Virus record (IMG/VR): IMGVR_UViG_3300034104_005687
Coordinates: 248,001 to 312,000 of that record
Direction: 5' to 3' (one strand)
DNA: 64,000 nucleotides
A program made the translations under genes and the position numbers. Below, piece by piece: positions 27,642 through 50,101 of the stretch (position 1 is the stretch's first letter; each line of letters starts with the position of its first letter). The notes under the pieces were generated by a model that worked only from the letters and a program-made list of their open reading frames with translations, was not told the DNA's origin and ran no database searches.

Positions 27642-28648
27642 AAATCAATCAATTTGTAAACGAATCCCACATGACCTGTCCCGAGTGCGGCGGCCCTGCT
27701 TTCAGTGATCTGCTGTTGGCAGAAAAGAAAGACGCTTGCTATCACAAGGTCAAAGCAAGTGCCAAGGTATGGCCGTCAGCGTATGCGTCTGGACGACTGG
27801 TGCAGTGCCGCAAAAAAGGTGCTGCCAACTATGGCAACAAATCTGAAGGTGTGGCCGAAGATGCTGTGGCAGACTTTGTGGCTCGCGGCGGCCAGATACA
27901 AAAAGGAAAACTACACAAACCACGTAAGGGTGAAACTTGGCAAGGATCATCACATATTGGCGCAGCGGGTGGACAAGGTACAAAAGGTACAGTGTCAGGT
28001 CGAGCTGCAAACACCAACCCAAAGGGTGGTAAACCAGTGGTCAGTGCCGAAGGTTACAATCCTGAATACGATGACGAAGCAGGCATGGCTGACAACAATC
28101 TCGAAACGCTAGAACGTGCAGTCAAAGGCATTGATGACCTAATTCAAGCCGGTGACAACTTGCCAGAATGGTGCCAAGAAAAGATTGCTGTGGCAAAAAG
28201 CATGTTGGTAAGTGTATGGGACTACATGTATTCAGAAGAAGCCAGTGACGAAGTAGATCCTGAAGTCGATGAGATGTTTGAAGCCATGGATCAGTTAGCA
28301 GAAGAGCTGGCTGCCAAGCACAAGGTCAATGTAGACACTGTGTGGGAAAGTTTTGAACAGCTGGATGATCGCATTCTGTACGAAACTGCTGCATGGCGAC
28401 GCAAAGAAGGCAAAAGCAAAACAGGCGGACTCAATGCCAAGGGTGTGGCCAGCTATCGTCGTGAGAACCCAGGATCAAAACTGCAAACTGCTGTGACCAC
28501 AAAGCCAAGCAAACTGAAGCCTGGATCAAAGGCTGCCAAACGCAGAAAGAGCTTCTGCGCCAGAATGTCGGGCGTAAAAGGCCCAATGAAAAAGCCCAAC
28601 GGCAAACCAACTCGCAAAGCACTAGCACTGCGCAAGTGGAACTGCTGA
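27638..28648 (+). CDS. Modular basic/acidic hypothetical protein, putative internal head protein
   Basis: 'MKINQFVNE' leader; modules separated by LAE/VAE/SAE/LYE motifs. Confidence 0.55.
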   Translation: MKINQFVNESHMTCPECGGPAFSDLLLAEKKDACYHKVKASAKVWPSAYASGRLVQCRKKGAANYGNKSEGVAEDAVADFVARGGQIQKGKLHKPRKGETWQGSSHIGAAGGQGTKGTVSGRAANTNPKGGKPVVSAEGYNPEYDDEAGMADNNLETLERAVKGIDDLIQAGDNLPEWCQEKIAVAKSMLVSVWDYMYSEEASDEVDPEVDEMFEAMDQLAEELAAKHKVNVDTVWESFEQLDDRILYETAAWRRKEGKSKTGGLNAKGVASYRRENPGSKLQTAVTTKPSKLKPGSKAAKRRKSFCARMSGVKGPMKKPNGKPTRKALALRKWNC

Positions 28649-32757: not shown

Positions 32758-32802
32758 TTTATTTGCGATGTGTTACAATAACAGTTAGGTTAACTTTTTA
32801 CT

Positions 32803-35073
32803 ATGTCCATGACAAACAACTCCGAAATTGAAAGCATTGTTGAACAAGCCGTTGAAATTGCTCGCGACAAAAAACATGAATTTGTTATCACCGAGCACTT
32901 GCTGTTGGCCATGATACGGTATCAGCCGTTTCGCAAACTACTGGACAAATTTGGCACAGACACTGAGCACATGGAGGTCGAGGTTGACACATATCTTGGT
33001 GGTCTGACCAACATTGTGACTTCAGCAGAAAACATCCAGCCCAGAAAAACACAGGCTCTGGAACGCATTTTCAATCGAGCCAATGTGCAGGCCATGTTTA
33101 CTGGCCGACGCACACTGACCACTGGCGACTTGTATCTCAGCATCATGAGTGAGAGCAACAGTCATGCACATTATTTCTTGCTGAAATACGGTGTGAAGAA
33201 AACAGAATTCATTGACTTCTGGCAGAAAAACTACACTGCTGCCGAAGGCAAACTCAGCAATACACAAGCCACAGAAATCCTGGAAGAGTACTGCATAAAC
33301 CTCAGTGCCAAGGCCAAAGCCAATCAGCTGGAGCCCATGATTGGCAGAAGCAAAGAAGTACAGGAAATGATCACTGTGCTGGCTCGCAAGTTCAAGGCCA
33401 ACGTGCTGATGGTGGGCGATCCTGGTGTGGGCAAGACTGCTATTGTGGAAGGCTTGGCCCAGGAAATTGTGGCTGGTCGAGTGCCTGCGTTTATCAAGGA
33501 TCATGAAGTATGGGGCTTGGAAATTGGTTCACTGTTGGCCGGATCTAAGTATCGCGGTGACTTTGAAGAAAAACTCAAGTCTGTGATTGCTGCACTGGAA
33601 AGCAGAAAGAACTGTATTTTGTTTGTGGACGAAGCACACACCATGAAAGGTGCAGGAGCCAGTTCCAACAGCAGCCTGGACTTTGCCAACATGCTGAAGC
33701 CTGCTATCACCAAAGGCAGCTTGAAAGTGGTGGCTTCAACTACCTGGGAAGAATACTATGAAAGCTTTGAAAAAGACCGTGCTCTTATGCGACGTTTCTA
33801 TCGCTTGTCGATTGATGAACCGGATACTCTCACTACCGAACAAATTCTCATTGGTTTGTCGCCCCGGCTCGAACAGTTTCACAATGTTCTCATTGATACC
33901 GAAGCCATTACGGGCGCAGTGGAGTTGGCCAACCGATACATCCATGATCGCAAAAACCCAGACAAGTCGATTGATCTCATTGATGCAGCATGTGCTCGGG
34001 AACGTGTCAAAGACGCAGGTACAGTTACAATTACAAAATCCATGATTGAACAACAGCTGAGTCGTGTGGCTGGTGTGCCTGTGGACAAACTGCAAAATGA
34101 ACGCAGTGCCAAAATTGTGGAACTGGAAGGCAATATCAAACAACGACTATATGGGCAAAATTCAGCTGTGGACACTGTGTTGGAACGTGTGTACATCAGC
34201 TTTGCCGGCATCGGCAATGAGAGCAAGCCCATGAGCAGTTTCTTGTTCCTGGGACCCACAGGCACAGGCAAAACAGAATTGGCCAAAGCATTGTCCAACA
34301 ATCTAGACATGCACTTGTTGCGATACGACATGAGTGAGTATCAGGAACGTCACTCAGTAAGCAGTTTGATTGGTGCGCCACCAGGATATGTGGGCTTTGA
34401 AGATGGCAACATCGGCGGCGGCAAACTGATCTCAGACATCAGCAAGCATCCGTTCAGCATTATCTTGTTTGACGAGATTGAAAAAGCTCACCCCGATGTC
34501 ACCAATATCTTGTTGCAGATGCTGGACGAAGGACACATCACTGGCAGCAACGGCAAAAAAGTCAGTTGCAAAAACACCATCATCATCATGACATCCAACC
34601 TGGGTGCACGTGACAGTGAAACCAATGCCATTGGCTTTGGTTCACAAGAAAAAACAGGCGAAGACGAACGAGCCATGAAAGAGTTTTTCAAGCCCGAGCT
34701 GCGAAATCGTATTGATGCTGTGTGCAAGTTTGTGAAACTGGACACACTGGCCATCAAGAAGATTGTGGTAAAGTTTGTGGATGAACTCAAAGCCAGCTTG
34801 GCACCCAAGAACATCAGACTGAATCTTAGCGAAGCAGTGATTGATTACTTGGCAGTCAAAGGATACGACAGCAAGATGGGCGCTCGACCATTGAGTCGCA
34901 AAATTGACGAAATCATTCGTGTGCCGTTGAGCAAGAAGATCTTGTTTGAACGTTTGAGCGACTGCACAGTCAACGTGGATATTCAAAACGACACAGCAGT
35001 GTTTGATGTAGAAGTTGCAGTTCAATCAGGAGTAAATCATGACGGTATCATTGTTGTCAACACTGAAAACTGA
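32803..35073 (+). CDS. clpA: ATP-dependent Clp protease ATP-binding subunit ClpA
   Basis: Clp N-domain 'HEFVITEHLLLA', two AAA+ modules (GDPGVGKT; GPTGTGKT), 'GAPPGYVGF', IGF loop; 756 aa with no ClpB M-domain. Confidence 0.92.
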   Translation: MSMTNNSEIESIVEQAVEIARDKKHEFVITEHLLLAMIRYQPFRKLLDKFGTDTEHMEVEVDTYLGGLTNIVTSAENIQPRKTQALERIFNRANVQAMFTGRRTLTTGDLYLSIMSESNSHAHYFLLKYGVKKTEFIDFWQKNYTAAEGKLSNTQATEILEEYCINLSAKAKANQLEPMIGRSKEVQEMITVLARKFKANVLMVGDPGVGKTAIVEGLAQEIVAGRVPAFIKDHEVWGLEIGSLLAGSKYRGDFEEKLKSVIAALESRKNCILFVDEAHTMKGAGASSNSSLDFANMLKPAITKGSLKVVASTTWEEYYESFEKDRALMRRFYRLSIDEPDTLTTEQILIGLSPRLEQFHNVLIDTEAITGAVELANRYIHDRKNPDKSIDLIDAACARERVKDAGTVTITKSMIEQQLSRVAGVPVDKLQNERSAKIVELEGNIKQRLYGQNSAVDTVLERVYISFAGIGNESKPMSSFLFLGPTGTGKTELAKALSNNLDMHLLRYDMSEYQERHSVSSLIGAPPGYVGFEDGNIGGGKLISDISKHPFSIILFDEIEKAHPDVTNILLQMLDEGHITGSNGKKVSCKNTIIIMTSNLGARDSETNAIGFGSQEKTGEDERAMKEFFKPELRNRIDAVCKFVKLDTLAIKKIVVKFVDELKASLAPKNIRLNLSEAVIDYLAVKGYDSKMGARPLSRKIDEIIRVPLSKKILFERLSDCTVNVDIQNDTAVFDVEVAVQSGVNHDGIIVVNTEN

Positions 35074-36692: not shown

Positions 36693-38162
36693 ATGACCAC
36701 AATTGTAATCATGCCTGGCGGCTTTCACCCATTTCATGCAGGACATGCTGCATTGTATCAAAGTGCGCAACAAACTTTTCCCGATGCTGAAGTGTATGTT
36801 GCTGCCACCAACGATACCAGTTCACGACCTTTTCCGTTTGCTGTAAAAGAAAAGCTGGCTCGATTAGCCGGAGTCGATACAGGTCATTTTGTACAAGTCA
36901 AATCACCGTTTAGAGCAGAAGAAATTACCGCCAAGTTTGATCCACAAAAAGATGTGTTGATCTTTGTACGCAGTGAAAAAGACGCAGCACAACCGCCACA
37001 ACCTGGTGGTGTCAAAAAAGACGGGTCGCCTAGCTACTTGCAGCCTTTGTTGGGTGCTCGAAAGCTAGAACCATTTGCAAAACATGCCTACATGGCATAC
37101 TTGCCCACTGTGGAGTTTGGTCCTGGCATGACGTCGGCCACTGAGATTCGTAGTGCATGGCCCCGGCTAAACGAAAAACGCAAAACAGCTCTTGTGATGA
37201 GCCTGTACCCTAAAACGCAAACGAACCCTAAGTTGGCACAAACTGTGGTCAAACTGTTGGACACAGCATTAGGTGTAGTAGATGAGAGTGCGCTGGATAA
37301 CCTTCCACGCCCAAACAAACGTAATCAATTCAAGAGTCTACACAAACAAAGAAAACAACGTGGACTAGACGAGCAAGGTGTGGCGGAAGGCGTTCCTCAA
37401 CCTGGTAAATCATCTGGCAAACCTATATCCTGGATTGATCCTACCAAAGTTGTAACAGAATATCTAACGCTAGATGAGATATTCAAGTCAGTATCAGGCA
37501 TACCATACTATAACAATGTTGTAACAGATAGAGATAATAAAGACTTTACTTGGGGAGTAACTAAAAGAGTAATTCAATATGCAAAAGAATTAGTCATACG
37601 ACCCGATGCCTATAAAAACTGGCCTCCTATAATAGTTTTAGATGGCAAATTACAAGACGGGGCACATCGCATATCCACTATATACTTGATGCAACAAAGA
37701 GTTCAGCCAAATAACCCAATTTGGAAAAACGCTAAACTAAAAGTAGAATTTGGTACATCAGATAATGTAAAGCAAGGTGTGGCGGAAGGCAACGATGATA
37801 TCTGGGGACCGCAAGGAAACTTTGCTGGAGATATCAAAATAGATGTTGGCACAGCAAGCATGAAAAAAATACAAGCTGGTGATACTGTAAAGTATTTTGG
37901 AGAAACAGCACAAGTAATTGAACTAGATCCAGACAAAAACTATGCTCGAATCTCAGCCAATGGCAAGACTCTGAATGTGCGTTTATCTGACTTAAAACAG
38001 TTAGGTCGAGGTGTAGGCGAAAACCAAGGTTGGGCTGCTACCTTTACCAACGAAGACGACTACATAGAAGAAAAGTGGAGCAGCAAGTACAAAAACAGCA
38101 TCAACTGTGCTGCACCACGAGGATTCAGTCAACGTGCTCACTGTGCTGGCCGCAAAAAATAA
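36693..38162 (+). CDS. Modular protein: HxGH nucleotidyltransferase + ParB/Srx-like cassette + SH3-like module + basic Cys tail
   Basis: 'PGGFHPFHAGH' and 'SATEIR'; 'PPIIVLDGKLQDGAHRI' lies between two QGVAEG repeats. Confidence 0.7.
   Translation: MTTIVIMPGGFHPFHAGHAALYQSAQQTFPDAEVYVAATNDTSSRPFPFAVKEKLARLAGVDTGHFVQVKSPFRAEEITAKFDPQKDVLIFVRSEKDAAQPPQPGGVKKDGSPSYLQPLLGARKLEPFAKHAYMAYLPTVEFGPGMTSATEIRSAWPRLNEKRKTALVMSLYPKTQTNPKLAQTVVKLLDTALGVVDESALDNLPRPNKRNQFKSLHKQRKQRGLDEQGVAEGVPQPGKSSGKPISWIDPTKVVTEYLTLDEIFKSVSGIPYYNNVVTDRDNKDFTWGVTKRVIQYAKELVIRPDAYKNWPPIIVLDGKLQDGAHRISTIYLMQQRVQPNNPIWKNAKLKVEFGTSDNVKQGVAEGNDDIWGPQGNFAGDIKIDVGTASMKKIQAGDTVKYFGETAQVIELDPDKNYARISANGKTLNVRLSDLKQLGRGVGENQGWAATFTNEDDYIEEKWSSKYKNSINCAAPRGFSQRAHCAGRKK
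37372..37390 (+). repeat. 19-bp repeat AGCAAGGTGTGGCGGAAGG, copy 1
   Basis: Exact match to the copies at 37771, 45990 and 46344. Confidence 0.95.
37771..37789 (+). repeat. 19-bp repeat AGCAAGGTGTGGCGGAAGG, copy 2
   Basis: 399 bp (133 codons) after copy 1. Confidence 0.95.
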
Positions 38163-38245
38163 TTGATTTTTGTTTCAAAACCACTAGAAAAATTTTGTCA
38201 GGCCGTGTATAATCTGTAAATATTAGCACATTTTACGGAGATACC

Positions 38246-39148
38246 ATGGCAGACATTCAACCCACAACCACCCCACCTAGCAACACTGATCCCGCTCAAG
38301 TACAGATTCAAGTTGATCTAGATTACTTGCGCACTACTCGTGTTCATATCTGCATGCCATGCTACGGCGGCATGATGACTGAACAAACATTCATGAGCTT
38401 TATCAAATGGGGCAATACTTGTCGCCAATTGGGCATTGACTGGACTGTGGAAACCATGACCAATGAAAGCTTAATCAGTCGTGCACGAAACACACTCACA
38501 GCCAAGTTCTTGAACACACCCGAAAGCACTCACTTGATGTTTATCGACGCAGACATTGGCTGGGAACCCTGGCACCTGTTGGTCATGATCAATGCTCGCA
38601 AAGACGTGATCGGCGGCTTGTACCCCATGAAGAGTTTGCCTGTGAAATGGTGCGTCAACGGCATCCCGGGCAAAGAAGAAGGCACACCCGAACAACCACA
38701 CTTGGTAGAAGTCAGCAAAACTGGCACAGGTTTCTTGTTGATCAAGCGCGATGTGTTTGAAAAGCTGAATCAGCACCCTGCTACTCGTCCGTTCAACAAC
38801 GACATTGGCTTGCCCGAAGAACTCAATCCTTACATGAAAACCTACTTTGACACAGCAGTGCGTGAAAATCGTTACTACTCCGAAGACTGGACATTCTGTG
38901 AAAACTGGCGTGATCTAGGCGGGGAAGTGTACGTGGACAAACGTGTGCTGTTGCGTCACGTGGGCACCTATGTGTTTGACGGTCAAACACAAGACAAACT
39001 GTATCAGGACCTTGCTGCTCTGGTCAAAGGTCCCACACATCAGATTCCTAGCCAGTTGCCGCCTGCGGCTACAGAGGCTGCACCTGCTGCAGAGCCTGAA
39101 GTGTTTGCATCTAGCCAAACCCCCGAAACAACTTCTACAGCTCCGTAA
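38246..39148 (+). CDS. GT-A fold (GT2-like) glycosyltransferase
   Basis: 'ESLISRARN', DxD 'FIDADIGW', 'GTGFLLIKRDVF', 'SEDWTFC'. Confidence 0.7.
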   Translation: MADIQPTTTPPSNTDPAQVQIQVDLDYLRTTRVHICMPCYGGMMTEQTFMSFIKWGNTCRQLGIDWTVETMTNESLISRARNTLTAKFLNTPESTHLMFIDADIGWEPWHLLVMINARKDVIGGLYPMKSLPVKWCVNGIPGKEEGTPEQPHLVEVSKTGTGFLLIKRDVFEKLNQHPATRPFNNDIGLPEELNPYMKTYFDTAVRENRYYSEDWTFCENWRDLGGEVYVDKRVLLRHVGTYVFDGQTQDKLYQDLAALVKGPTHQIPSQLPPAATEAAPAAEPEVFASSQTPETTSTAP

Positions 39149-39162
39149 CGGTAAATACACTC

Positions 39163-42100
39163 ATGAACCTCCATGAGTTAGATTCCTACAACCTTGCAGA
39201 TGCAGTAAAATTCCACAATCGCCTTAACCCGCGGTTGTGGGACAAAACTGAACATCTGTTGCCCGAAGTACACAACAAACTGCTGGAAATAGCAGCCGAT
39301 TTTCAAGAATTTTTGGGTGTGCCTGATCTAGACGTAGTGGATGTCACAGTGTCAGGATCCAATGCAGCCTACAGTTATACCCCACACAGTGACATTGACC
39401 TGCATCTTGTGGTGCAAATGCCAGAGCAAAACAGCGAAGTATTTCAAGAACTTTTCAACGCCAAAAAATATCAGTACAACGATGAACACGACATACGCAT
39501 AGGGGGTGCTGATGTTGAACTCTATGTTCAACCTGCGGATCAAAAACATCATAGTCTAGGAATCTACAGTGTCAAAAACAATGACTGGGTCCAGGTACCA
39601 CGCAGACGCAAAATAGAACTAGACGACCAGTGCGTGGCTCATAAAACTGAAGATCTGGCAGCCAGGATTGATCAAGCTGTGGCATCCGGCAGCGAAGAAA
39701 CCATGCAGCGTTTGTGGGACAAAATTAAGACCATGCGTCAGACTGGGCTAGAGCAAGCCGGCGAGTTTGGCTGCGATAACTTGGTATTCAAAATGCTGCG
39801 TCGTTCTGGACACATCGAACGTTTAACGCAAGCCAAGACACAGGCTCATGATCGTGAGCTCAGTCTCACAGAAAAGAAAAAACGCAAGAAGGCCAAAAAG
39901 AAATTTACCTATGGTGCGTTTGGTGGCTGGTTCTATCCAGGCTACAACTTTGGCGCAGGCGAAACCGGTGATGCTGGTGGCGGAGACGGCGGTGGAGAAA
40001 GTGTACGCGAAGTTGATTCAGGCATTGCACAAGGCAGCGCCATTGGTGACGCTGGTGCACAAAGCACATGGGACGGGGTAAGTCCTGACACTGACGAATA
40101 TCTCAGTGAAGAAGCCGAAGCCGAAAGCATTGTGCGTGATTTCATTAGAGACACTGCTCGCCGACTGAACATTCAGAAACTACCGCGTGTGCGACTACAC
40201 AATGATGACAGCTGGAGCGAAAATGCCGGCAGCTTTGGCAGATACGTACCTGAAACACACGAACTACATGTGAACATGGCCGATCGCCACATCATGGACA
40301 TATTGCGTACCACTGCACACGAATTGGCACATTGTAGACAGCACGAACTGTCGCCGTTGCCTGCTGATGCTGGCAACACTGGCAGTCGTTGGGAAAATCA
40401 AGCACATGCCACAGCTGGTGTGATCATGCGTGATTATGCTGATGCACATCCAGAAATGTTTGACAAATCTGCTGTAACTGAAAGCTCAGGTTACATTCCC
40501 ACTGACGCAGAAAAGAACGATCCACGCTTTGTGATGGCCTTGAGTCCAGATGTTCGTCCAGGCGCAACAGGCAAGAATGCCAACAAGATGGCGTTGAGGA
40601 CCAATGCACAAGGTCAGCCACAATTGGCCAAGACCAATGGCCTAGTAGAAAGCCTGCGTCGAGAGTTTGCTCTCCTAGAGGATGAATTTCTAGGCGAAAT
40701 CAAAATGACCAGCAAGAATCTGCGAGCTGAAGCCGCCAAGACTGGTGCTATAGCTGGCATGGAATTTGAAATGATTGTGCCCAACACTGAAGGCAACGAT
40801 GACGGTGACTTGGAACCCGACTATGACGCAGACCAACGCTGCCGTAGCATAGATGATGCTGTGGAGTTTTTCTATGACGGCGACTACAATGGCCGTAGAG
40901 ATGTTGAAAACCTACGTGCAAGAATGAACAACGATTTCCAGGAATGGCGTGATGATAAAATTGGCAATGATTGGGATACGGATGGGGATGATTATGTGCG
41001 TGAGTGGGTTGCCAACAATGTAGACGAATCAGAATGGAACAACAATGAAGATGATCCTGAAGCTTCGCGTGAAGAAAAATTAGACAACTTTGCTGCTAAT
41101 GTTTACAATGATCCCGGCAGTAATTACCATCAACAAGCATTTGATGAGTTCCGAGAAGAAAATCAAGACTCATATGACGAAAGTGACTGGTTAGACGCTG
41201 AAGACCTAGATCGCATGAGCGGTGTTGAAAACGCCTATGATATTTCTTGGCCGCACTGGACCAGCGGTGGCGGCGGTGGCGAAGCCAGTATTGAAGATGT
41301 AGCACAAGAGTTTGAAAATGCCATAGGCCGTGACGTTCGAGCCAGTGGCAGCTATCATTCAGGACGAGTACAAAGACCCAGCCCTACACAACAACACTAT
41401 GTGGTCGAGCCCGATGGCAGTTTGGAGCCGGATGATACCAATGATCAAGGCCTGGAGTTTGTAAGTCCGCCCCTGCCCATTGACGATATACTAAGTGACT
41501 TGAACAAAGTCAAGGCCTGGGCCAAAGAATATGGCTGCTATACCAACGACTCAACAGGCTTGCACATCAACATCTCAGTGCCCAACTACAGCAGAGAAAA
41601 CTTGGACTTTGTAAAGTTAGCATTGTTAATGGGCGACGAGTATATCCTGGACTTGTTTGGTCGTGTTGGCAATACCTACGCTAAGTCAGCCATGAAGCTG
41701 GTCAAGGAAAAAGTACGTGAAAATCCAGATGCAGCAAAACAGTTGCTGGACAAGATGAAGGGTAACTTGGATGCACTTGCTACCAAGGCCATCCACTCAG
41801 GTATTACCAGCAAGTACACCAGCATCAACACCAAGGACGGACACATTGAATTCCGCTCACCTGGTGGTGACTGGCTGGATGACAACTTTGACAAGATTGA
41901 AAACACCCTGTTACGATTCACAGTGGCCATGAGTGCGGCACTGAATCCGGATGCTTATCGTCAAGAGTATCAAAAGAAACTTTACAAATTGTTGACTGCG
42001 GACCAAAAGGATTCAGACACAATCAAGTATTTTGCACAATATGCTGCTGGTGAGCTACCCAAGGCTGCCTTGCGTAGTTTTGTTAAGCAAGCACAACTAG

Positions 42101-43389
42101 AGCGCAAGGTAAAACGCGGCGAAACAATCAATCAAAAAATGTGGTGGAGCGTTACCAATCCCCCGCAAAGTTCTGCCGGTATAGAAGTTGTTGCTACCTC
42201 TAAAGAAGAAGCCATTGCCCAAGCCCTGGGACCAGATGGCTATCCTGGCTGGGCCAACACACGACAATCAGTTGTGGCCAAGCCTTTGCGTCCATTTGAA
42301 GACACCAGTTTGGACAAACCTTTTGTATGGAAAGTTCAAGGCACTGATTCTCCATATCAAAGACAAGGTATAGAAGTTGTTGCTTTTAGTGAGCTCGAAG
42401 CAATGCAAAAAGCCAGACGACGATGGAATTTAAACATAGGTACAACCCCAGAACAAGAATTCTTTAGAACCAACCGTTGGATTGCTACCACTGTTCGTCC
42501 TGCTGAAGAACCTGAACAAGATCAAGACAGTGCAACAACTGGCAACTGGGGAGCTTATGTAACGGTGCTTGATCGGTTTGCAGAATTCAACGACCAAGGT
42601 ACCACCCGTACTAGGAGATTCAGAGACCAGGCAGCAGCTGAGTCCTGGATACAGAATTATAATATAAGGTACCCTAGAAATGATCTTGAATTGACTGCTC
42701 GAGAGCTTGAACCTTCTGAACAAGCGCCGCAGTCTGGCCGTGCTGCCACAAGCCCAACAGGACAGTGGAAAATGGTTGATGGTTTAAATCGTGAAGTATA
42801 TCGTTTCCGTCCTGCAGAGAATACTAGAGCCAAAGCCAATGAGTTAGCCTCACTATGGGCACGGGAAAACAACTTTGATGGCAATTATCAAGTTGAACCT
42901 GCGGAAGATACTGCACAAACAGATACGAACCCACTAACACCAACAGGCTCTGGACCCTGGGAAGTAGCCAGCAGAAGCAACAATCAAGTTTATTACAACC
43001 CACCAAGCAGTAATCCTATTGAAGCAGAGTCACAATCAAGAACGTGGTTAAGACAAAACGATCACAACGAATCAGACTTTGAAGTACGAACTCGAGAAGG
43101 TGTTGGTGGCACAGACACAGCACAAGGTGGTATCATTGATATTGAACCAGATATATCACAATACAATGCACCACAAACACTGACCCGCCCTGGGCAAGAT
43201 CAGCAGGTGTTTACAGGCCAATGGAAAGTAACACTCGATGGCGAAGAGATTCATCGCTTTGGCGGCATTGGTAACAATCAAATGGATGCAAATCGTGTTG
43301 GCCGTGAATGGGCACGTAATCAAATACGTCAAGGATTATTATATCCTGCGGGCGATATCGAAGTCTTTCCAGTAATGGGAAATGCCTAA
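39163..43389 (+). CDS. Polyvalent protein: Pol-beta-type nucleotidyltransferase + HExxH metallopeptidase-like + amidoligase (COOH-NH2 ligase)-like + C-terminal repeats
   Basis: 'GSNAAY....SDIDLH'; 'AHELAH...E..A'; 'GMEFE', 'EPDGSL', 'GLEFVSP', 'TGLHIN', 'KYTSIN', 'IEFR'. Confidence 0.75.
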   Translation: MNLHELDSYNLADAVKFHNRLNPRLWDKTEHLLPEVHNKLLEIAADFQEFLGVPDLDVVDVTVSGSNAAYSYTPHSDIDLHLVVQMPEQNSEVFQELFNAKKYQYNDEHDIRIGGADVELYVQPADQKHHSLGIYSVKNNDWVQVPRRRKIELDDQCVAHKTEDLAARIDQAVASGSEETMQRLWDKIKTMRQTGLEQAGEFGCDNLVFKMLRRSGHIERLTQAKTQAHDRELSLTEKKKRKKAKKKFTYGAFGGWFYPGYNFGAGETGDAGGGDGGGESVREVDSGIAQGSAIGDAGAQSTWDGVSPDTDEYLSEEAEAESIVRDFIRDTARRLNIQKLPRVRLHNDDSWSENAGSFGRYVPETHELHVNMADRHIMDILRTTAHELAHCRQHELSPLPADAGNTGSRWENQAHATAGVIMRDYADAHPEMFDKSAVTESSGYIPTDAEKNDPRFVMALSPDVRPGATGKNANKMALRTNAQGQPQLAKTNGLVESLRREFALLEDEFLGEIKMTSKNLRAEAAKTGAIAGMEFEMIVPNTEGNDDGDLEPDYDADQRCRSIDDAVEFFYDGDYNGRRDVENLRARMNNDFQEWRDDKIGNDWDTDGDDYVREWVANNVDESEWNNNEDDPEASREEKLDNFAANVYNDPGSNYHQQAFDEFREENQDSYDESDWLDAEDLDRMSGVENAYDISWPHWTSGGGGGEASIEDVAQEFENAIGRDVRASGSYHSGRVQRPSPTQQHYVVEPDGSLEPDDTNDQGLEFVSPPLPIDDILSDLNKVKAWAKEYGCYTNDSTGLHINISVPNYSRENLDFVKLALLMGDEYILDLFGRVGNTYAKSAMKLVKEKVRENPDAAKQLLDKMKGNLDALATKAIHSGITSKYTSINTKDGHIEFRSPGGDWLDDNFDKIENTLLRFTVAMSAALNPDAYRQEYQKKLYKLLTADQKDSDTIKYFAQYAAGELPKAALRSFVKQAQLERKVKRGETINQKMWWSVTNPPQSSAGIEVVATSKEEAIAQALGPDGYPGWANTRQSVVAKPLRPFEDTSLDKPFVWKVQGTDSPYQRQGIEVVAFSELEAMQKARRRWNLNIGTTPEQEFFRTNRWIATTVRPAEEPEQDQDSATTGNWGAYVTVLDRFAEFNDQGTTRTRRFRDQAAAESWIQNYNIRYPRNDLELTARELEPSEQAPQSGRAATSPTGQWKMVDGLNREVYRFRPAENTRAKANELASLWARENNFDGNYQVEPAEDTAQTDTNPLTPTGSGPWEVASRSNNQVYYNPPSSNPIEAESQSRTWLRQNDHNESDFEVRTREGVGGTDTAQGGIIDIEPDISQYNAPQTLTRPGQDQQVFTGQWKVTLDGEEIHRFGGIGNNQMDANRVGREWARNQIRQGLLYPAGDIEVFPVMGNA

Positions 43390-43931
43390 TGCGAGCTAAT
43401 GAGTTTGTTGTTGAAGCACACGTTCCACCTATACGTGATCAGATTCGTGCTGACGTGAAAAAGAATGGTCCTGGTGAATATTTTGTGCGTGTAACTGCTG
43501 TAGACCAACTGGGATTTAGTGCCAGGCAAAAGTTTGGTCGATCGCCCGACATGGATGATCCCAACTTTGATGTAGACTACATTGGTGCAGGCCGAGGACG
43601 TCCTGCACTTTGGTTCTACCCAGTTAACGAATATCTCAAAAACAAAGACTTGTACGCAACAGAAAATCCTTATGTTTGGCTAGTTAAACTAAAAGACACA
43701 GCTTGGCTACAACCTGCTCGTCGTGGTGATTCAGGTGTGGCTAATCCGCCGCAGGGTAAACAACGTGTGGGTATTATGCGTATGAGTAATCCTCCGGCTG
43801 CTATATTCTTCCAGCCAGGATTTGATGTTGTAGGACGTTACTATGACTATGCAGGACAACACAAGCGTCACGGCGAAGTCAAGGGTCGTCCTGATCCTAG
43901 CTGGTTTGATCGTGTTAGAGGTCAATCATGA
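43389..43931 (+). CDS. Hypothetical protein with MRAxEF leader (putative internal head protein)
   Basis: Starts MRANEFVVE. Confidence 0.65.
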   Translation: MRANEFVVEAHVPPIRDQIRADVKKNGPGEYFVRVTAVDQLGFSARQKFGRSPDMDDPNFDVDYIGAGRGRPALWFYPVNEYLKNKDLYATENPYVWLVKLKDTAWLQPARRGDSGVANPPQGKQRVGIMRMSNPPAAIFFQPGFDVVGRYYDYAGQHKRHGEVKGRPDPSWFDRVRGQS

Positions 43932-44410
43932 GAGCACAAGAGTTTGTAGGCGAAAAAGTTTCTCCAGAAACTGCACAAGACGGTTTTCTTGATCAGCAGC
44001 TGGTCAACAACGGAGAATGGACAATCAAAGCCACGGGCGATACACGACGCTATGGTGACACAGTTGCCAATGTGTTGCATGTAAAGGTGTTTGATACCAA
44101 CACCAATGAAGAACTGGCCTGGGTCGATTTTCTTGTAAAAACTCGTAGAGAAGATGGAGAGCGATACATGGAGTCAGCATACACTTATGTAAATCCTCGA
44201 TACCGCGGCAAGGGACTGGCCAAGTTAATGTATCAGTATGCCAATAGCTTGGGCAACGACATTCAACCAAGTCAAATGCAAACTGACATGGGCAAAGGTA
44301 TGTGGAAAGGACTCAACAAGGCTGTGAAACAACCTCCTTTGCTGCCTACTGTGTCTGTGCCCGAGAAACCGCCCAGTGTGTGGCAGCGTTTGCGAAAGGC
44401 CGTGGTATGA
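43928..44410 (+). CDS. GNAT-family acetyltransferase with MRAxEF leader
   Basis: Acetyl-CoA motif A 'YVNPRYRGKGLAKLMY' and 'QTDMGKGMW'; starts MRAQEFVGE. Confidence 0.8.
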   Translation: MRAQEFVGEKVSPETAQDGFLDQQLVNNGEWTIKATGDTRRYGDTVANVLHVKVFDTNTNEELAWVDFLVKTRREDGERYMESAYTYVNPRYRGKGLAKLMYQYANSLGNDIQPSQMQTDMGKGMWKGLNKAVKQPPLLPTVSVPEKPPSVWQRLRKAVV

Positions 44411-44955
44411 GAGCAAATGAATTTACACAACCACGGGCTGCTGGCTGTATAATAGTAGCTGAGGACACAGGTCGTTGGTGTTTACAGCAACGCAGTGACA
44501 CAGTGAGTGATCCTGGCCTGTGGTCAACCTGGGGTGGCGGCTGTGAACTAGGAGAAACACTGGAACAATGTGTGCGTAGAGAGCTGGCAGAAGAAGGTGG
44601 ATATGTAGGCCCACTCCAGTTGGAACCACTCAGCAGCAACAGTCAGTATGCCACCTTTATTGGTCGTGTGCCACATGAATTTGAACCCAAAATCAATCGT
44701 GAATCAAAAGACTGGTGCTGGTGTGAGTCAGATCAACTGCCTGAACCCATGCATCCAGGACTTGCACAAGCGTTGAGTGAAAACTTTGCTGACGGCAAAG
44801 TAAAAGGAAAAAGCAGACCTGGGCGTGTAAAACGTGCAGGTGCCAGCTGCAATGGAAGTGTAACAGATCTAAGAGCAAGAGCCAAACGTGCATCAGGAGA
44901 AAGAGCCCGTATGTACCACTGGTGTGCCAACATGAAATCAGGACGTAAAAAATAA
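44407..44955 (+). CDS. Nudix hydrolase with MRAxEF leader and a basic C-terminal module
   Basis: Nudix box 'GGCELGETLEQCVRRELAEEGG'; ATG 44407 is coupled to the previous stop. Confidence 0.85.
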   Translation: MRANEFTQPRAAGCIIVAEDTGRWCLQQRSDTVSDPGLWSTWGGGCELGETLEQCVRRELAEEGGYVGPLQLEPLSSNSQYATFIGRVPHEFEPKINRESKDWCWCESDQLPEPMHPGLAQALSENFADGKVKGKSRPGRVKRAGASCNGSVTDLRARAKRASGERARMYHWCANMKSGRKK

Positions 44956-44999
44956 GAGGCGGTCTCCTGTAACTTAAACTTATTTCAAAAACAAACAGC

Positions 45000-45445
45000 A
45001 CAAGGTTGGCGGGCCGAATATAATACCGCTGGTGAATCCGCTCTGATGTGTGGCGGTAGCCAATTCTGTCCGCTGTTAACAGGCTTCTGTTCTCTACCCC
45101 TGTGCCGCAGGGATGCCCAGAGAAAACGTCTGCCCTGTGGCAGTAGCGTTAGAACAGTCGTACGGGTTGAGCGTAGCGCAAGCTAGCTTATTGTCAGATA
45201 CTGTCATAGATCCAATTGACACCGAGGGATCTTTAAAAGTCGTAGCAGGTAGGGTAAGGTACAGAGCCCAGAACAGTAGACAACACAAATACCTGCTGTC
45301 ATAAGTGTGGCTGAGCAACTCAGCGAATGTCTTGGCGCCCTGTTTCAGGGTGTCGTATGGCGTCACAATCTAGCGAAATATCTCTTGTGTATTTGTATAA
45401 ACAAAGCGAGCTGACAAGCGAAGCTTAGGATTGCGTAGCAATCCG
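45000..45445 (+). ncRNA. Unidentified, highly structured non-coding element (candidate large ncRNA and/or ssDNA structure)
   Basis: Core of the longest gap in the window (44956-45466), with at least nine readable stems, some with G-U pairs and GCAA loops. Confidence 0.6.
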
Positions 45446-45466
45446 ATCAGACTAAATACAAATACT

Positions 45467-46597
45467 ATGCTATTCAACGAACTCTTTAACTCTAGCCCTG
45501 AACCCCTTGCTGAGGGTGTATTGGATAACCCTGGGCAAGAACACAGCCCGGTTGCGTCTGCTATTATTCGTCGTATCTTGCTACAGCGTACAGACTTATT
45601 GAGCAAGTACGGTCCTGAGCGAGTGGGTGCAGCAGTTGACGATGTTGCTGACTTTGTGGGTGACACGGACGAAATTGGCAGTAGCGATGTATCCGGTTGG
45701 GTTCGCCAAGTTGAACAGATGTTGGGCAACATGACAGAAGCTGGATACAAGCGTGATGCGTATCAAAGAGATTACGACAATAGTGTTGCAGGCATGAGCA
45801 AACGTGACTCTTACGCCTACAGTCAAGACGGTGGTGGCAACGATGAACGCCACGATCTAGATCCCACTGAGTGGTACATTGTCAAAGATGGCAAAATGTT
45901 CAAAGCAACTGTGTATCCTACCCAAGTACAGTCAGCAATGTCACAGGGCTTTAGTCCCAGCAGAGAAGAAGCCAAAGCCAGAGCTGACCAGCAAGGTGTG
46001 GCGGAAGGCTCAGATTTTTTTGCAGGTAGCAAATTTGCCGACGAAGATGGCAATACATTTAGTGTAGAAAAAATAATAGCCTTTGCCAAAAAAAATCCAA
46101 AATATTTTCATAAAGATTTTCCATTATCAAAAATAAAACATGATCTTTCATGGTGGCAAGGAAATAAAGAAAGAATGATGAATGCTGATACAAGTTTTCC
46201 ACTGTTAGTAATTCAAAATGATGATGGACATCTTGGTGTTGCTGATGGGCTTAATCGCATGAAAAAAGCAGTTGATGTTGAGAAGAAAACAACTATTGAT
46301 GTTTATCTAGTTCCAAAAAAAGATATTATGAAGTTCTCTGAAAAGCAAGGTGTGGCGGAAGGTGATATCGGTCAGTTAGAAAAAGATATTGCTGCTGCAC
46401 CAGTTGAGCCTATTGCCAACATGGAAGGCTCCAACGAAAAGATTGGCAATATGGATGCTGATGCGTTTGATTCTGCCATGGCACGCCTTAAAAAGCTAGC
46501 AGGTGCAGGGCCAATGAAAACTGTGTGGGATCCTACCAAACGTGTTTACCGCAACATGCCCACAGCAGTTCAACCTCCTCAACAGCCCAAAAAATGA
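45467..46597 (+). CDS. Modular putative internal head protein with a ParB-like cassette
   Basis: CTAAATA upstream; 'MLFNELF...LAE'; 'FPLLVIQNDDGHLGVADGLNRMKKA' lies between two QGVAEG repeats. Confidence 0.65.
   Translation: MLFNELFNSSPEPLAEGVLDNPGQEHSPVASAIIRRILLQRTDLLSKYGPERVGAAVDDVADFVGDTDEIGSSDVSGWVRQVEQMLGNMTEAGYKRDAYQRDYDNSVAGMSKRDSYAYSQDGGGNDERHDLDPTEWYIVKDGKMFKATVYPTQVQSAMSQGFSPSREEAKARADQQGVAEGSDFFAGSKFADEDGNTFSVEKIIAFAKKNPKYFHKDFPLSKIKHDLSWWQGNKERMMNADTSFPLLVIQNDDGHLGVADGLNRMKKAVDVEKKTTIDVYLVPKKDIMKFSEKQGVAEGDIGQLEKDIAAAPVEPIANMEGSNEKIGNMDADAFDSAMARLKKLAGAGPMKTVWDPTKRVYRNMPTAVQPPQQPKK
45990..46008 (+). repeat. 19-bp repeat AGCAAGGTGTGGCGGAAGG, copy 3
   Basis: Exact match. Confidence 0.95.
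46344..46362 (+). repeat. 19-bp repeat AGCAAGGTGTGGCGGAAGG, copy 4
   Basis: 354 bp (118 codons) after copy 3. Confidence 0.95.
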
Positions 46598-46860
46598 GAG
46601 CCAGCGAGTTCATTGGCACCGTTGCCAAACGTAATGCTCGCGTAGGCTCCAGACATCAACGTGGGCACACTCCGCTGCCCAGATATCGTTACAGCAATGA
46701 TCAAAAATTGGATGAACTCAGTTTCCTGGGTTCTGAATGCACCAAGGACTGTTCAGGACATCGTGCTGGCTACGACTGGTACAAGAAACGTGGCTATGAA
46801 CCAGCCAGCTGGAGCAACAGCTTCAACCGTGGTGCTGCCTTGGCTGCTGCTGGCAAATAA
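46594..46860 (+). CDS. Small protein with MRAxEF leader
   Basis: Starts MRASEF; 'CTKDCSGHRAGYDW' module follows LDE. Confidence 0.65.
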   Translation: MRASEFIGTVAKRNARVGSRHQRGHTPLPRYRYSNDQKLDELSFLGSECTKDCSGHRAGYDWYKKRGYEPASWSNSFNRGAALAAAGK

Positions 46861-46893: not shown

Positions 46894-47733
46894 ATGATTG
46901 ATATTTGCACTGTTGTATTCCAACAAGAAATTCCTGTGCTGAAATTACAGGCTCAAAGCATAGATTTGTACTGCCACGACATTGGCGTAAACTGCATTTA
47001 TGTTGTGGTCAACGATCACGACTCAGTTGTGCAACTGATTGATCCTGCATGGTGGGGCAGTATGAGCCATTTGGTTCGAGTCATACCCAGATCTGTGTTT
47101 TCAACTGACTTTGTGGACAATGGATGGGTCAGTCAGCAAGTACTCAAACTACTGGTGCCCGCCATGAGCTACAATCAGTGTACCATGGTATTGGATGCCA
47201 AAACTGTATTTGTTCAACCTGTGACATTGTCACAACTGTTTGATTCCACAGGCAAGATTGCCACAGGAACCCTGGAGCTGTATCCAGTGTTTGATGCTGC
47301 TAGACAAATTGTCAATGCCACATACAACATTGACCTACAGCATCAAATTGGACCCGGCGGCGTGCCGTTTGTGTTCAACAACAACACAGTGAGAATGATG
47401 ATTGCAGATACCACTGCACTGACTCAGCAGAACTTCCCTGAATGGTTTCAATCGCAAGGCATGCTCACAGAGTTTGTGCTGTATTCTGGTTATGTGCAAT
47501 ACCGACATGGTTCATTGACCAGTTTGTACACTACAGATCAACCATCAATACGGCCGGTAAACATGTGTCACAGTGAGGTTGCATTAGCGGATCGTATACT
47601 AGATCATATGCAGCAGGCCACCACAGTGAGCATACACCGAAACGCCTGGCCGCAGCTCACTGTGAGTCAGCAACAACAGTATCGTGATTTGCTGATCGAC
47701 AAAGGAATTACTCAAGCATGGGCACTAAAATAA
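46894..47733 (+). CDS. Glycosyltransferase-related (DUF6492-like) protein
   Basis: 'GWVSQQVLKL', 'VLDAK', 'TEFVLY'; same pattern as 50098..51114. Confidence 0.55.
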   Translation: MIDICTVVFQQEIPVLKLQAQSIDLYCHDIGVNCIYVVVNDHDSVVQLIDPAWWGSMSHLVRVIPRSVFSTDFVDNGWVSQQVLKLLVPAMSYNQCTMVLDAKTVFVQPVTLSQLFDSTGKIATGTLELYPVFDAARQIVNATYNIDLQHQIGPGGVPFVFNNNTVRMMIADTTALTQQNFPEWFQSQGMLTEFVLYSGYVQYRHGSLTSLYTTDQPSIRPVNMCHSEVALADRILDHMQQATTVSIHRNAWPQLTVSQQQQYRDLLIDKGITQAWALK

Positions 47734-48242
47734 ACGCACTGTGCATGGTTGCACACCCTGATGACTGTGTGATTTTTGCCTATAGTTATATTCACAATCA
47801 TCCAGAAATGAATTGGACCATTGGATACCTGACCTATACTGAACAAGACCCACGAGGTGCAGAGCTTGCTGCTTTTTGGCGCCGCCGAGGTATTGATACT
47901 GTGTTCTTGGGATTTGAAGATCATTGGCACGACAATGAACAAAAACAATTCACTAGATGGACAGAGGAACGTGCCGAACGAGCCTGTTGGGAGTTGGCAA
48001 AGAATTTTGATCTGGTGTTGACACATGATGAATTTGGCGACTACGGACACATACATCATGTGTTGGTACACAATTCAGTGCAATGGCATCCGCGTCTGGT
48101 CACATTTGCGCCACCAGGCCAAGGTACCACATACACTGTGCCTGCAGGTACATACAACCTCAATGAGTTGCCCATGCACGGTGAAATTGTGCAAGGCTTT
48201 CATCACAGTGAACACCGCAACAGTTACAAGGAAACAAAATGA
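47718..48242 (+). CDS. PIG-L/LmbE-family deacetylase
   Basis: 'VAHPDD' and 'THDEFGDYGHIHH'. Confidence 0.8.
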   Translation: MGTKINALCMVAHPDDCVIFAYSYIHNHPEMNWTIGYLTYTEQDPRGAELAAFWRRRGIDTVFLGFEDHWHDNEQKQFTRWTEERAERACWELAKNFDLVLTHDEFGDYGHIHHVLVHNSVQWHPRLVTFAPPGQGTTYTVPAGTYNLNELPMHGEIVQGFHHSEHRNSYKETK

Positions 48243-49051
48243 AATTAATGGTAGCAGGATGTAGTTATTCAGCAGTGAGTCAGCGCATGCCTGGCACCAG
48301 CTGGAGTGAGTTGCTGGCTCAACAACTAGGCTGGGACCTGACGAATCTAGCACGACAGGGTTGCAGCAACGGGGGCATACGTGTGCAGATTGATGAAATA
48401 CTGAGGCAACGTCCTGACTTTGCTGTGATCACTCCCACGTTCTGGGACAGAATGGAAATACCAGCTTCGGCAGCACCATTTGATTGGAAAAAAAGCACAG
48501 GTGGATGGAATCCAGAAATACAGCGTCACTTGCAAGATCGCACATTAAAAAATGGCTATAATCGTGACGATGGCATCAACAACGTCAACTACGGCAACAA
48601 CAACTACAACATGATCTGCGAGACTATCTACACCTTAGCAGAAAACTTTGATCATCCTTATCGTTCAGGGCTGATCAGCAAAACATCTCAGACTGCTGTA
48701 CGACACTACATAGATGGTATATATGATTCAGAATGGAAACGGCAACAAGACGAATGGATTGTTAAGTCGGGCATTTTTGAACTGCATCATGCTGGCATTG
48801 ACTTTTTGTTTGTGCCTGTGTTGTTGTGGCCCTTTGATCCTGCGTTGGGGGCAACTCAATGGCGCAAATCAATCAGTACTGCTGTGCCTGACCGCAACGT
48901 GATGTTTGACGAACGAGAATCAATATTGCCGTTGTGTGGCAACAATCCGTTTGAAGGAGAAGATCCTGGTTACCATTCGGGTGCCCGGGGCCAACAACTC
49001 ATTGCTGACAACTACTATCGCAGAATCACACAAGATTTTGGATTAGCGTAA
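48239..49051 (+). CDS. SGNH-hydrolase-like protein
   Basis: 'AGCSYS...SWSELLA...NLARQGCSN', C-terminal 'YH....Q..IA'. Confidence 0.55.
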   Translation: MKLMVAGCSYSAVSQRMPGTSWSELLAQQLGWDLTNLARQGCSNGGIRVQIDEILRQRPDFAVITPTFWDRMEIPASAAPFDWKKSTGGWNPEIQRHLQDRTLKNGYNRDDGINNVNYGNNNYNMICETIYTLAENFDHPYRSGLISKTSQTAVRHYIDGIYDSEWKRQQDEWIVKSGIFELHHAGIDFLFVPVLLWPFDPALGATQWRKSISTAVPDRNVMFDERESILPLCGNNPFEGEDPGYHSGARGQQLIADNYYRRITQDFGLA

Positions 49052-50101
49052 ATGTGGCTCAATCATGCGCTGCATTTCGGAGTATTTTTCTTGACGAAAC
49101 TCATATAGCCTGTGATGATTGTGGTCCAGGATGGATCGAGCTTGCAGTAGTATTTTCTGATGGTCTTGTTGACTCAACCATTTTACTTGCTCAAATGCAG
49201 CTTGCCAACGATCAATGTCACGTTCAATGCTGTCATAGCTTTCGTCCAGTATGGAATCAAAAGTCTTGAATCCAAAGGATCGAAGTTTTTTCAACCAGTG
49301 TGCTACGCCAAAGTGCACAAACAGTCTACGAGCATGTAGGCATTTGCCAATCTTTTCTGCCATGAGATAGCAGTCTCCAGATCCCAGTGTTTCTACCAAG
49401 ATGCTGTAGTATGTGCGATTGTATATTTCCCAGGGTTCGATGCTGCTGATAGAGTTGTCAAGATGTTCTCTTACCTCCCATGCAGGATCTAGATTTGGAC
49501 TCACATAAGGCCACACAATTTTTTGATCAGGAAATTGTTGTTGTACTTTGTCAGTGGTTTCGGTGATGTTGCCACCTACAAAAATGTCTCGGTAGGTAGC
49601 AATACTGTGATTCAGCAGTCCTGATTTTTCAAGACTCAGCATCACATAGTCTCGATGTTCTCTGCGTGTGCCACACAAACAGTCAAACAAATAAGGACGT
49701 GACAGTGGAAAATCATCACGTGGTGGGTTCCACTGTAGGAAAGTAAAACTCCACCATGGACGATACACTGTACGATGAGTCAAAGTTTCAGAAGCATACA
49801 GTCCTGCTACACTCAACAGCCAGTTGTTGGCATCGGTGGTATCAATCCAGTTGATCAACTCTGTCTGCGATCTAAACTCAATATCAGTAAACAACACCAG
49901 GTCAAACTGACTCAATTGTAGATTTTCAAATTCTGGTTTGTAAGAAAATTCTGTGGGTCGATTAAAGTACACTGGCAATACTGCAATCTTGGTAGGCTGT
50001 GCCAGTGCAGTGGCTAGATCCACTATCTGTGGATAATCAAAACCCCAATCTATGGCTTGGTAGCCCGGGCTATAAATTTTGAGTTGCGAGAAATCTGTCA
50101 T
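49043..50101 (-). CDS. Hypothetical protein, possibly glycosyltransferase-like (GT-B)
   Basis: 352 aa; 'SILVET...AEKIGK...F.TF..ILDESYD' pattern; lies in a glycan gene cluster. Confidence 0.45.
   Translation of the reverse strand: MTDFSQLKIYSPGYQAIDWGFDYPQIVDLATALAQPTKIAVLPVYFNRPTEFSYKPEFENLQLSQFDLVLFTDIEFRSQTELINWIDTTDANNWLLSVAGLYASETLTHRTVYRPWWSFTFLQWNPPRDDFPLSRPYLFDCLCGTRREHRDYVMLSLEKSGLLNHSIATYRDIFVGGNITETTDKVQQQFPDQKIVWPYVSPNLDPAWEVREHLDNSISSIEPWEIYNRTYYSILVETLGSGDCYLMAEKIGKCLHARRLFVHFGVAHWLKKLRSFGFKTFDSILDESYDSIERDIDRWQAAFEQVKWLSQQDHQKILLQARSILDHNHHRLYEFRQEKYSEMQRMIEPHLR

Follow-up and report, generated by a model that had tools for sequence, protein, structure and literature searches.

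In polymorphic toxins, a short motif (VENN ahead of CdiA-CT, PxxxxDPxGL ahead of the exchanged part of Rhs) marks the border at which domains are exchanged by recombination, and short conserved crossover points are also present in T4-type genomes, in the His boxes and G-islands of T-even tail-fibre adhesins and in PeSL gene shuffling. The internal proteins of phage T4 are targeted to the prohead by a leader, MKTYQEFIAE, that is then removed, and one of these proteins, IPI*, is an anti-restriction protein. The T4 prohead protease, gp21, cleaves after Glu at the motif L/I-X-E (PMC9026906). Phage polyvalent proteins, some of which possess ParB/sulfiredoxin (ParB/Srx) domains, are predicted in the main text of Iyer et al. 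2017 (PMC5512222) to be packaged in the head, processed, and delivered early. Here, we describe a locus within a 64,000-nucleotide stretch of viral DNA (the window) in which two genes, designated gene A and gene B, each hold a small ParB/Srx-like cassette between two copies of an 18-bp in-frame repeat, the QGVAEG linker. The window comprises bases 248001-312000 of a 349,369-bp IMG/VR virus record (IMGVR_UViG_3300034104_005687) that CheckV estimates to be 97% complete.

An initial annotation of this DNA, made from the sequence alone, had pointed out the two repeat-bounded cassettes and had interpreted them as dissimilar ParB/Srx domains, independently acquired nucleotide-processing effectors delivered at infection, possibly against host defence. 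We present evidence that both cassettes adopt the ParB/Srx fold, that they have been exchanged in frame among phage genomes, and that their repeats represent a widespread linker conserved at the DNA level, a feature that lies outside the earlier interpretation. With a probability of roughly 0.65, we favor the reading that mobile ParB/Srx-fold cassettes are exchanged by recombination within these linkers, and that the proteins carrying them are packaged, cleaved at the linkers, and injected.

Results

Two genes contain an identical in-frame linker

The 17-mer CAAGGTGTGGCGGAAGG occurs in four exact copies in the window, each of which is read as QGVAEG in the frame of a long open reading frame (ORF). 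The linker is counted here as 18 nt, that is, the 17-mer plus the last wobble base. Linkers 1 and 2 (37374..37391 and 37773..37790) are located in gene A and linkers 3 and 4 (45992..46009 and 46346..46363, the latter with T as its last wobble base) in gene B; these and all other features of the two genes lie on the plus strand. The repeat-bounded cassettes of the initial annotation were recovered between them, together with the peptides that it had quoted, with DGAHR in one and DGLNR in the other. With one mismatch allowed, no further copy is present in the 349,369-bp genome, and a reversed control sequence gave none.

Since the probability that one QGVAE takes exactly these codons is 0.004 under the genome's own codon usage, and since only 7% of Ala codons are GCG, the repeat is a DNA-level identity rather than a by-product of codon bias (the shares of GGT and GTG are 30% and 39%). 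In contrast, gene starts of the form MRAxEF, which are described below, keep their peptide but vary freely at synonymous sites. Two other readings of the repeats were dropped. Rfam was blank over the whole window, which disfavored an RNA element, and inspection by eye for an internal ribosome-binding site with a start codon in or after the linker revealed no in-frame start at a usable distance.

Gene A (36693..38162) encodes 489 amino acids, in the order cytidylyltransferase-like N-terminal domain, linker, cassette 1, linker, SH3-like domain, decayed linker, and basic C-terminal mini-domain. Family searches matched residues 6-84 to Pfam CTP_transf_like (E 6e-4), residues 396-434 weakly to the MSSS SH3 family, and the protein to NCBIfam cyt_tran_rel. 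Cassette 1 (37392..37772) spans 127 codons, residues 234-360, and possesses an invariant N-terminal P-Q-x-G-x-S-S-G motif as well as the DGAHR motif at 37656-37670. The Cys-containing mini-domain at the end of the protein (38076..38159; start WSSKYK, end GRKK) is 60-72% identical, by tblastn, to small hypothetical proteins of the T4-like cyanophages S-CAM9, S-SM2, Bellamy, and P-TIM68, and it is itself a recurrent cassette, present in many linker-bearing proteins.

Gene B (45431..46597) encodes 388 amino acids when read from TTG 45431, and ATG 45467 is more likely to be its true start. From there the order is leader, two small domains, linker, cassette 2, linker, and C-terminal domain. The probable leader (45467..45517), MLFNELF...PLAE/G, where the slash denotes the putative cleavage position here and below, ends in an L-A-E-G site. 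In one other locus (L013), the domain that follows this leader is preceded by a canonical QGVAEG. The domains of gene B occur in a different order in L013 and L008, and its C-terminal part is shared with protein P0048. Cassette 2 (46010..46345) spans 112 codons, residues 194-305, and carries DGLNR at 46244-46258, whereas the wider family has D-G-L-H-R. Both genes encode 'beads-on-a-string' proteins, in which small independent domains are joined by the 18-bp QGVAEG linker.

Two further junctions resemble the linker. In gene A, GVGEN (38010..38024) separates the SH3-like domain from the C-terminal mini-domain, and in locus L040 the same SH3-like domain ends in QGVEEG. A fifth, variant linker, EGVAED (GAAGGTGTGGCCGAAGAT; 27845..27862, plus strand), lies in an ORF at 27638-28648. 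GVGEN and EGVAED are examples of decayed, older-looking junctions. The ORF that contains EGVAED is ordered as leader MKINQFVNE, Zn-ribbon/'SAYASG' mini-domain, EGVAED, acidic region, and C-terminal DUF6321; its mini-domains recur behind canonical linkers in other contigs.

Cassettes are exchanged between linkers

One JGI contig of 121 kb (L127) is syntenic with the window, with genes for DnaJ and a ClpA-like protein, small genes, the transferase gene, and a 303-aa gene. Its transferase gene, the positional orthologue of gene A, is 52% identical to it at the amino acid level in the N-terminal domain and 46% in the SH3-like domain. Between its linkers this orthologue contains cassette 2, where the window phage holds cassette 1. 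Cassette 2 (45997-46362) is 95.4% identical in DNA to the L127 copy over 366 nt, as opposed to 65-70% for the syntenic backbone. Similarly, cassette 1 (37372-37788) is 96% identical over 417 nt to its counterpart in a second positional orthologue (L132), with a backbone of 69-74%, and 95% identical over 416 nt to part of an unrelated 785-aa protein (L131), where it is the sole match in 9 kb. Overall, the cassettes are 94-96% identical in DNA to copies found elsewhere, compared with 60-74% for backbone or surroundings, and in every comparison the block of high identity begins and ends inside the linkers. Independent acquisition of the two cassettes, as had been suggested in the initial annotation, gains strong support from these figures.

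Because four-fold degenerate sites differ by 10-21% in the cassettes and by 49-74% in backbone genes, the cassettes are much more recent than the genomes in which they reside. These alignments establish each cassette, at the sequence level, as laterally mobile, in frame, and recently exchanged. Identical or nearly identical cassettes follow GNAT, NUDIX, deaminase, sigma-70 region 4, chitinase, or other ParB-like modules; in one protein (P0055) the two cassettes stand in tandem with each other, and a 525-aa protein of another JGI contig (P0195) strings together four different ParB-like modules with QGVAEG linkers between them. The circulating pool holds at least four ParB/Srx-like cassette types. 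Further orthologues of gene A (P0050, P0197, P0204, and P0207) keep the transferase domain and vary in their downstream parts. Chimeric assembly was ruled out as the source of the junctions, as the same junctions are found in independent contigs of different projects and assemblers usually work with k-mers longer than an 18-bp repeat.

The linker is widespread in viral contigs

An exact scan of IMG/VR with the 17-mer identified at least 120 stretches of DNA with the linker in addition to the window; by a rough estimate, about 10 matches would be expected for a random 17-mer. Among the matches listed (at least 120 loci), 161 of 162 linker copies are read as QGVAEG within open frames of 100 aa or more, the spacings of neighbouring copies are all multiples of three, and an ORF contains up to six linkers. 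Segments between linkers have a median length of 70 aa, and clustering by sequence sorts 100 of them into 85 groups. The exact 14-nt core is kept at 35 of the 64 x-GVAEG sites that lie outside selection by the search pattern, and at these 64 sites the shares of the linker codons are 92% for GGT, 81% for GTG, 80% for GCG, and 89% for GAA. The linker is thus conserved at synonymous sites, including the rare GCG codon, and codon bias as the source of its identity was ruled out by these shares together with the genome's codon usage.

Many relatives contain variant junctions such as QGMAEN and QDVAEG. Between one and four canonical copies are found in each of five other jumbo contigs, on a single strand and largely confined to one part of the contig; three of the five contain a gp21 homologue. 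A literature search for the linker peptide returned no phage paper mentioning the motif. Taken together, the matches reveal a widespread, DNA-conserved, in-frame linker that delimits swappable cassettes of many kinds, the ParB-like ones being only some of them.

Both cassettes are predicted to adopt a ParB/Srx fold

Single-sequence searches of both cassettes returned nothing meaningful from Pfam, PDB sequences, NCBIfam, or PADLOC; nevertheless, relatives of both are numerous. Those of cassette 1 comprise 35 stand-alone proteins of about 140 aa and 140 copies embedded in longer proteins. Cassette 2 has 10 close relatives, corresponds to phrog_17560 (function unknown), and reaches 237 representative proteins in an exhaustive profile search. 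AlphaFold2 models built with the family alignments attained pLDDT values of 90.6 for cassette 1 and 89.0 for cassette 2. Common to both models is a core consisting of a beta-hairpin, whose first strand carries P-I/L-x-V, a helix that starts from D-G-x-H/N-R, and a final strand.

With both models, Foldseek searches of the PDB placed sulfiredoxin, the N-terminal domain of pNOB8 ParB, PadC, Noc, ParB, SbnI, and KorB at the top, at E values of 0.03-1. A structural alignment independent of Foldseek was run against 48,161 representative chains. For cassette 1, the nine best chains were all ParB/Srx members (Z 5.5-3.7), led by Srx (5.5), SerK (4.9), PadC (4.6), and SbnI (4.3) and followed by Atu1540, KorB, Osa, and pNOB8 ParB. 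For cassette 2, 11 of the 12 chains with Z of at least 2 were ParB/Srx members, the best being Srx (Z 6.8). Structure searches of BFVD and the ESM Atlas agree with the assignment. Additionally, a profile of 63 cassette-2 sequences (A4) matched SbnI with an E value of 5.6e-6, in an alignment that extends across the hairpin and the motif (P-i-L-V..D-G-l-H-R). The motif residues D89, G90, A91, H92, and R93 of cassette 1 are at least 90% conserved in its family alignment (A1); in cassette 2, D79, G80, and R83 are invariant in the 63 sequences, and N replaces the H of the consensus D-G-L-H-R.

These models and structural neighbours, along with the SbnI profile match, bear out the fold that the initial annotation had proposed for both segments, and lead us to conclude that the cassettes are ParB/Srx domains of a minimal, enzyme-like kind, as in Srx, SerK, and SbnI. 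Its statement that they are otherwise dissimilar holds as well. BLASTP aligned them with an E value of 0.61 over 21 residues, and hhalign gave a probability of 0.9% for a comparison of the two families, so that by sequence they represent two unrelated families. Neither cassette matched PF02195 (ParB_N) even at E values of up to 10, and because they also have no helix-turn-helix (HTH) and no dimerization domain, they are not regarded as ParB partition proteins. The catalytic Cys of the sulfiredoxin motif G-C-H-R is absent from the corresponding G-A-H-R and G-L-N-R. SbnI and SerK are two-domain enzymes of about 250 aa in which a C-terminal domain completes the active site; the cassettes, which end at the linkers, have no such domain, and the structural matches span only residues 1-100 of chains of 241-254 aa. 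DdrB-like ParB appeared as a single weak BFVD match at rank 30, and no family model matched.

By analogy with Srx, SerK, and SbnI, which use ATP, and with phage ParB-fold proteins, whose nucleoside triphosphate (NTP) preferences are reported to be varied, nucleotide binding by the cassettes is probable, coupled to either phosphate transfer or DNA nicking. A role against host defence is a reasonable guess; no PADLOC model matches either cassette.

Leaders suggest a prohead-protease site within the linker

The genome contains a gp21-type prohead protease (Pfam Peptidase_S77, E 2e-23; G000:84691-85329), whose gene is adjacent to those for a scaffold-like (gp22-like) protein and the major capsid protein, which is of the Gp23 type (E 1.6e-97). 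By this gene content, the phage is a T4-like jumbo phage. The capsid protein has an L-K-E/N site within the expected N-terminal region. Directly upstream of the protease gene, a very acidic protein (579-1439 of L125; G000:83825-84685) starts with MNRFEQLIE, a leader of the same style, and is probably a prohead core protein like gp67 or gp68.

Six genes in the genome start with MRA[N/Q/R/S]EF, and four of these adjoin genes A and B in the window. Leaders are found in the window at 43389, 43928, 44407, 46594, and 27294, and elsewhere in the genome at G000:134261 and 134629 (one starts with MRYREILE). To the eye, MRAxEF leaders are similar to MKTYQEFIAE, the capsid-targeting sequence of T4, and examples with their putative cuts are MRANEFVVE/A and MRAQEFVGE/K. 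Stand-alone homologues of both cassettes have leaders ending in [L/I/V]-x-E, with one or two residues left ahead of the domain, and the Glu at the leader end aligns exactly with that of ..G-V-A-E/G in the fused copies; in one relative, MRASEFVVAE/G stands directly before the domain. Considering the L/I-X-E specificity of gp21, the T4-like leaders, and this alignment of stand-alone leader ends with the linker Glu, we infer that the linker may reproduce, inside the protein, the site at which the leader would be cut. When the gp21-like protease was modelled in complex with 45 aa surrounding linker 1, the score was 0.00, a value that is given no weight either way.

Neighbouring genes

Upstream of gene A, genes for a DnaJ-like and a ClpA/ClpB-like chaperone lie side by side at 31981-35073, a synteny kept in L127 and L132. 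In L127, a Zeta_toxin/AAA_33-like gene (4603-5364) is inserted between the small genes and the transferase gene; it is absent from that position in the window. Gene A is followed by a 300-aa gene and then, still ahead of gene B, by the gene for a 1408-aa polyvalent-type protein (39163..43389, plus strand). This protein has a nucleotidyltransferase-like N-terminus, a zincin-like HELAH motif (40318-40332), and an amidoligase, and small modules are repeated toward its C-terminus. It matches Pfam Amidoligase_2 (1.3e-8) and, weakly, NTP_transf_2, has PHROGs matches, and despite its polyvalent architecture contains no canonical linker.

Three consecutive leader-bearing genes (43389..44955, plus strand; starts MRANEF, MRAQEF, and MRANEF) encode an unknown, a GNAT-like, and a NUDIX protein. 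The tail of the NUDIX protein (44773-44952) is a basic mini-domain with an NFADGK start and an MKSGRKK end, preceded by L-S-E, and it recurs after '..E/NFADG' junctions in dozens of unrelated multi-domain proteins. A 511-nt non-coding stretch (44956-45466) without any ORF or protein similarity separates the NUDIX gene from gene B. Its RNA fold z-score is -2.46 and it has no Rfam match; at 45048-45063, it includes a 16-mer that resembles the linker but contains a stop codon and may be what is left of a cassette junction.

Beyond gene B, a small gene (46594..46860, plus strand) starts with MRASEF, of the same leader family. It is followed at 46894-52759 by DUF6492, PIG-L deacetylase-like, and radical-SAM-like genes on both strands, a block that may be a sugar or DNA modification module, and a family-B DNA polymerase gene lies farther along in the window. 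Among GenBank phages, no near-identity DNA match to 36693-46597 was found, and tblastn of gene B gave no match.

Discussion

We propose that homologous recombination within the DNA-conserved linkers would swap or insert cassettes while leaving the reading frame intact. A double crossover would exchange one cassette for another, insertion at a single linker would duplicate the linker, and copies that retain the consensus would stay exchangeable. The V-A-E/G of the linker and leaders of the type MRAxEF..E/ would imitate the capsid-targeting sequence of T4 along with the I-A-E/ at which it is cut, so that leader-bearing precursors could be packed into the prohead, cut there into separate small domains by the gp21-like protease, and ejected as free domains with the phage DNA. 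Early in infection, the ParB/Srx modules might then act as nucleotide-binding, phosphotransfer (SbnI/SerK/Srx-like), or nicking effectors. Delivery at infection, as claimed in the initial annotation, is plausible in light of the gp21 and gp23 genes, the leaders resembling a capsid-targeting sequence, and the likeness of the linker to the gp21 motif; the leaderless gene A speaks against that part of the claim. A broader proposal, which we regard as possible rather than probable, is that the linker serves a large population of freshwater T4-like jumbo phages as a dedicated dual-purpose signal. As DNA, it would be the crossover site of an in-frame 'domain integron', through which at least 85 small effector cassettes could be inserted into carrier genes, exchanged, or rearranged; as protein, it would be a prohead-protease site that frees each cassette as an injected effector of its own, with ParB/Srx domains as one abundant class of payload.

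Several observations count against the reading that we favor. In gene A and its orthologues, no leader precedes the transferase domain, which is the very first part of the protein, and this makes packaging of gene A doubtful, and the P3 residue of the linker is V rather than the published L/I of the gp21 motif. One linker-bearing jumbo contig that is 99% complete gave no gp21 match. Structural similarity is modest by score, with Z values of 5.5 and 6.8 and Foldseek E > 0.006, though the lists of matches are specific, and the cassette-1 profile (A1) found only chance-level matches among PDB sequences. In cassette 2, Asn in place of the family His, which is also seen in the closest relatives, may alter or abolish catalysis.

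The gravest of the alternatives, which we nevertheless consider unlikely, is that the linker is a flexible hinge and nothing more, that genes A and B encode intact cytoplasmic multi-domain enzymes, and that recombination among co-infecting phages has kept the linkers identical. Such a reading readily accommodates the absence of a leader from gene A and its orthologues and the location of linkers between domains that are modelled as folding independently. A hinge, however, does not call for one fixed peptide, and this explanation leaves aside both the alignment of the linker Glu with the leader-ending Glu of stand-alone homologues and the presence of T4-like capsid-targeting leaders along with a gp21-like protease. 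It is still less probable that the linkers are cut, not by the prohead protease, but by a zincin-like (HExxH) metallopeptidase of polyvalent proteins such as the 1408-aa ORF. That ORF does combine HELAH with a downstream E-N-Q-A-H (from 40318), similar modules adjoin cassettes in P0053, P0055, and L038, and the main text of PMC5512222 proposes processing by such a metallopeptidase (MPTase). Nevertheless, no Pfam MPTase model matched at E values of up to 0.1, many linker-bearing proteins have no such module, and the strictly conserved Glu at P1 is a gp21-type signature.

Other explanations concern the cassettes themselves and are very improbable. ParB, Noc, and KorB share the fold, which might suggest that the cassettes serve segregation of the phage genome, either as true ParB partition or CTP-clamp proteins or as what remains of such proteins; domains of 112-127 aa with neither an HTH nor a dimerization domain nor a PF02195 match, embedded in unrelated enzymes and swapped between slots, whose closest sequence relative, SbnI, is an ATP-using enzyme, hardly fit this role. 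We give equally little credence to a chance resemblance of motifs in segments that are not ParB/Srx domains at all. While the lack of single-sequence matches in Pfam, NCBIfam, PADLOC, and the PDB and the modest structural scores would be expected in that case, four independent structure libraries ranked ParB/Srx members at the top for both models, and the match of the cassette-2 profile to SbnI (E 5.6e-6) was obtained from sequence. The most remote alternative is that the cassettes are self-splicing or excised elements, intein- or intron-like, with the repeats as their ends. They are in-frame insertions between direct repeats, present in some orthologues and absent from others, yet they contain no intein blocks, their junctions (..E-G/V.. 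and ..K-Q/G.., the slash here marking the border) provide neither a +1 Cys/Ser/Thr nor His-Asn, Rfam recognized no intron in the window, stand-alone homologues are ordinary genes, and the linker is common to more than 85 unrelated segment families.

If cassette exchange through the linkers operates as proposed, these phages would shuffle protein domains rather than genes by way of a common pool, with a fixed linker that preserves the reading frame and that may also be the cut site freeing each domain. Such a process could explain a fast diversification of the early or injected effectors of jumbo phages. In practical terms, one 17-mer provides a sequence handle with which hundreds of candidate effector domains might be harvested from metagenomes, and the linker could help to build multi-effector cargo in T4-type vectors. 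The two cassettes would add two ParB/Srx-fold families that are invisible to current family libraries and to surveys based on PF02195.

The closest described parallels each share some properties with this locus. The main text of PMC5512222 describes polyvalent proteins as strings of unrelated effector domains, including ParB/Srx, GNAT, NUDIX, nucleotidyltransferase, and zincin peptidase domains. Gene A combines transferase, ParB-like, SH3-like, and basic domains, and an HExxH module is found in a neighbouring ORF; the 1408-aa neighbour itself fits the description. The packaging model put forward here likewise matches those proposed for phage polyvalent proteins, P1 DdrB, and T4 IPI*. On the other hand, a word search of the main text of PMC5512222 did not find the word 'linker', and that text describes no two-sided exchange of cassettes. 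The ParB family treated there is a different one, DdrB-like, whose marks are an extra helix with a conserved Tyr and an Asp/Asn at the end of strand 2, and the domains described here are very small (median 70 aa among the matches listed).

With the T4 internal proteins IPI-III, the locus shares a leader of about 10 aa (MKTYQEFIAE in T4; MRANEFVVE and MRAQEFVGE here, and MNLQEFII.. in a stand-alone relative), a site after Glu in [I/L/V]-x-E that is putative here, a gp21 homologue next to gp22- and gp23-like genes, and diverse small payloads. The T4 proteins are single-domain and cut once, whereas the putative site is repeated here between domains, so that several products would arise from each precursor. 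Polymorphic toxins resemble this system in their use of a short conserved motif as an exchange border and of a shared cassette pool. They differ in having one border, a C-terminal toxin, and an immunity gene, while the cassettes here are internal, bordered on both sides, and without immunity genes. The conserved motifs of tail-fibre adhesins and PeSL act on receptor-binding segments or whole genes, not on pooled in-frame effector domains. At the level of the domain, SbnI, SerK, and sulfiredoxin share with the cassettes the core fold, the lack of an HTH, and D-G-x-H-R (G-C-H-R in Srx) at the start of the helix that follows the hairpin; the cassettes differ from SbnI and SerK in having no C-terminal domain and from Srx in having no catalytic Cys, and identity to these proteins is only 8-24%.

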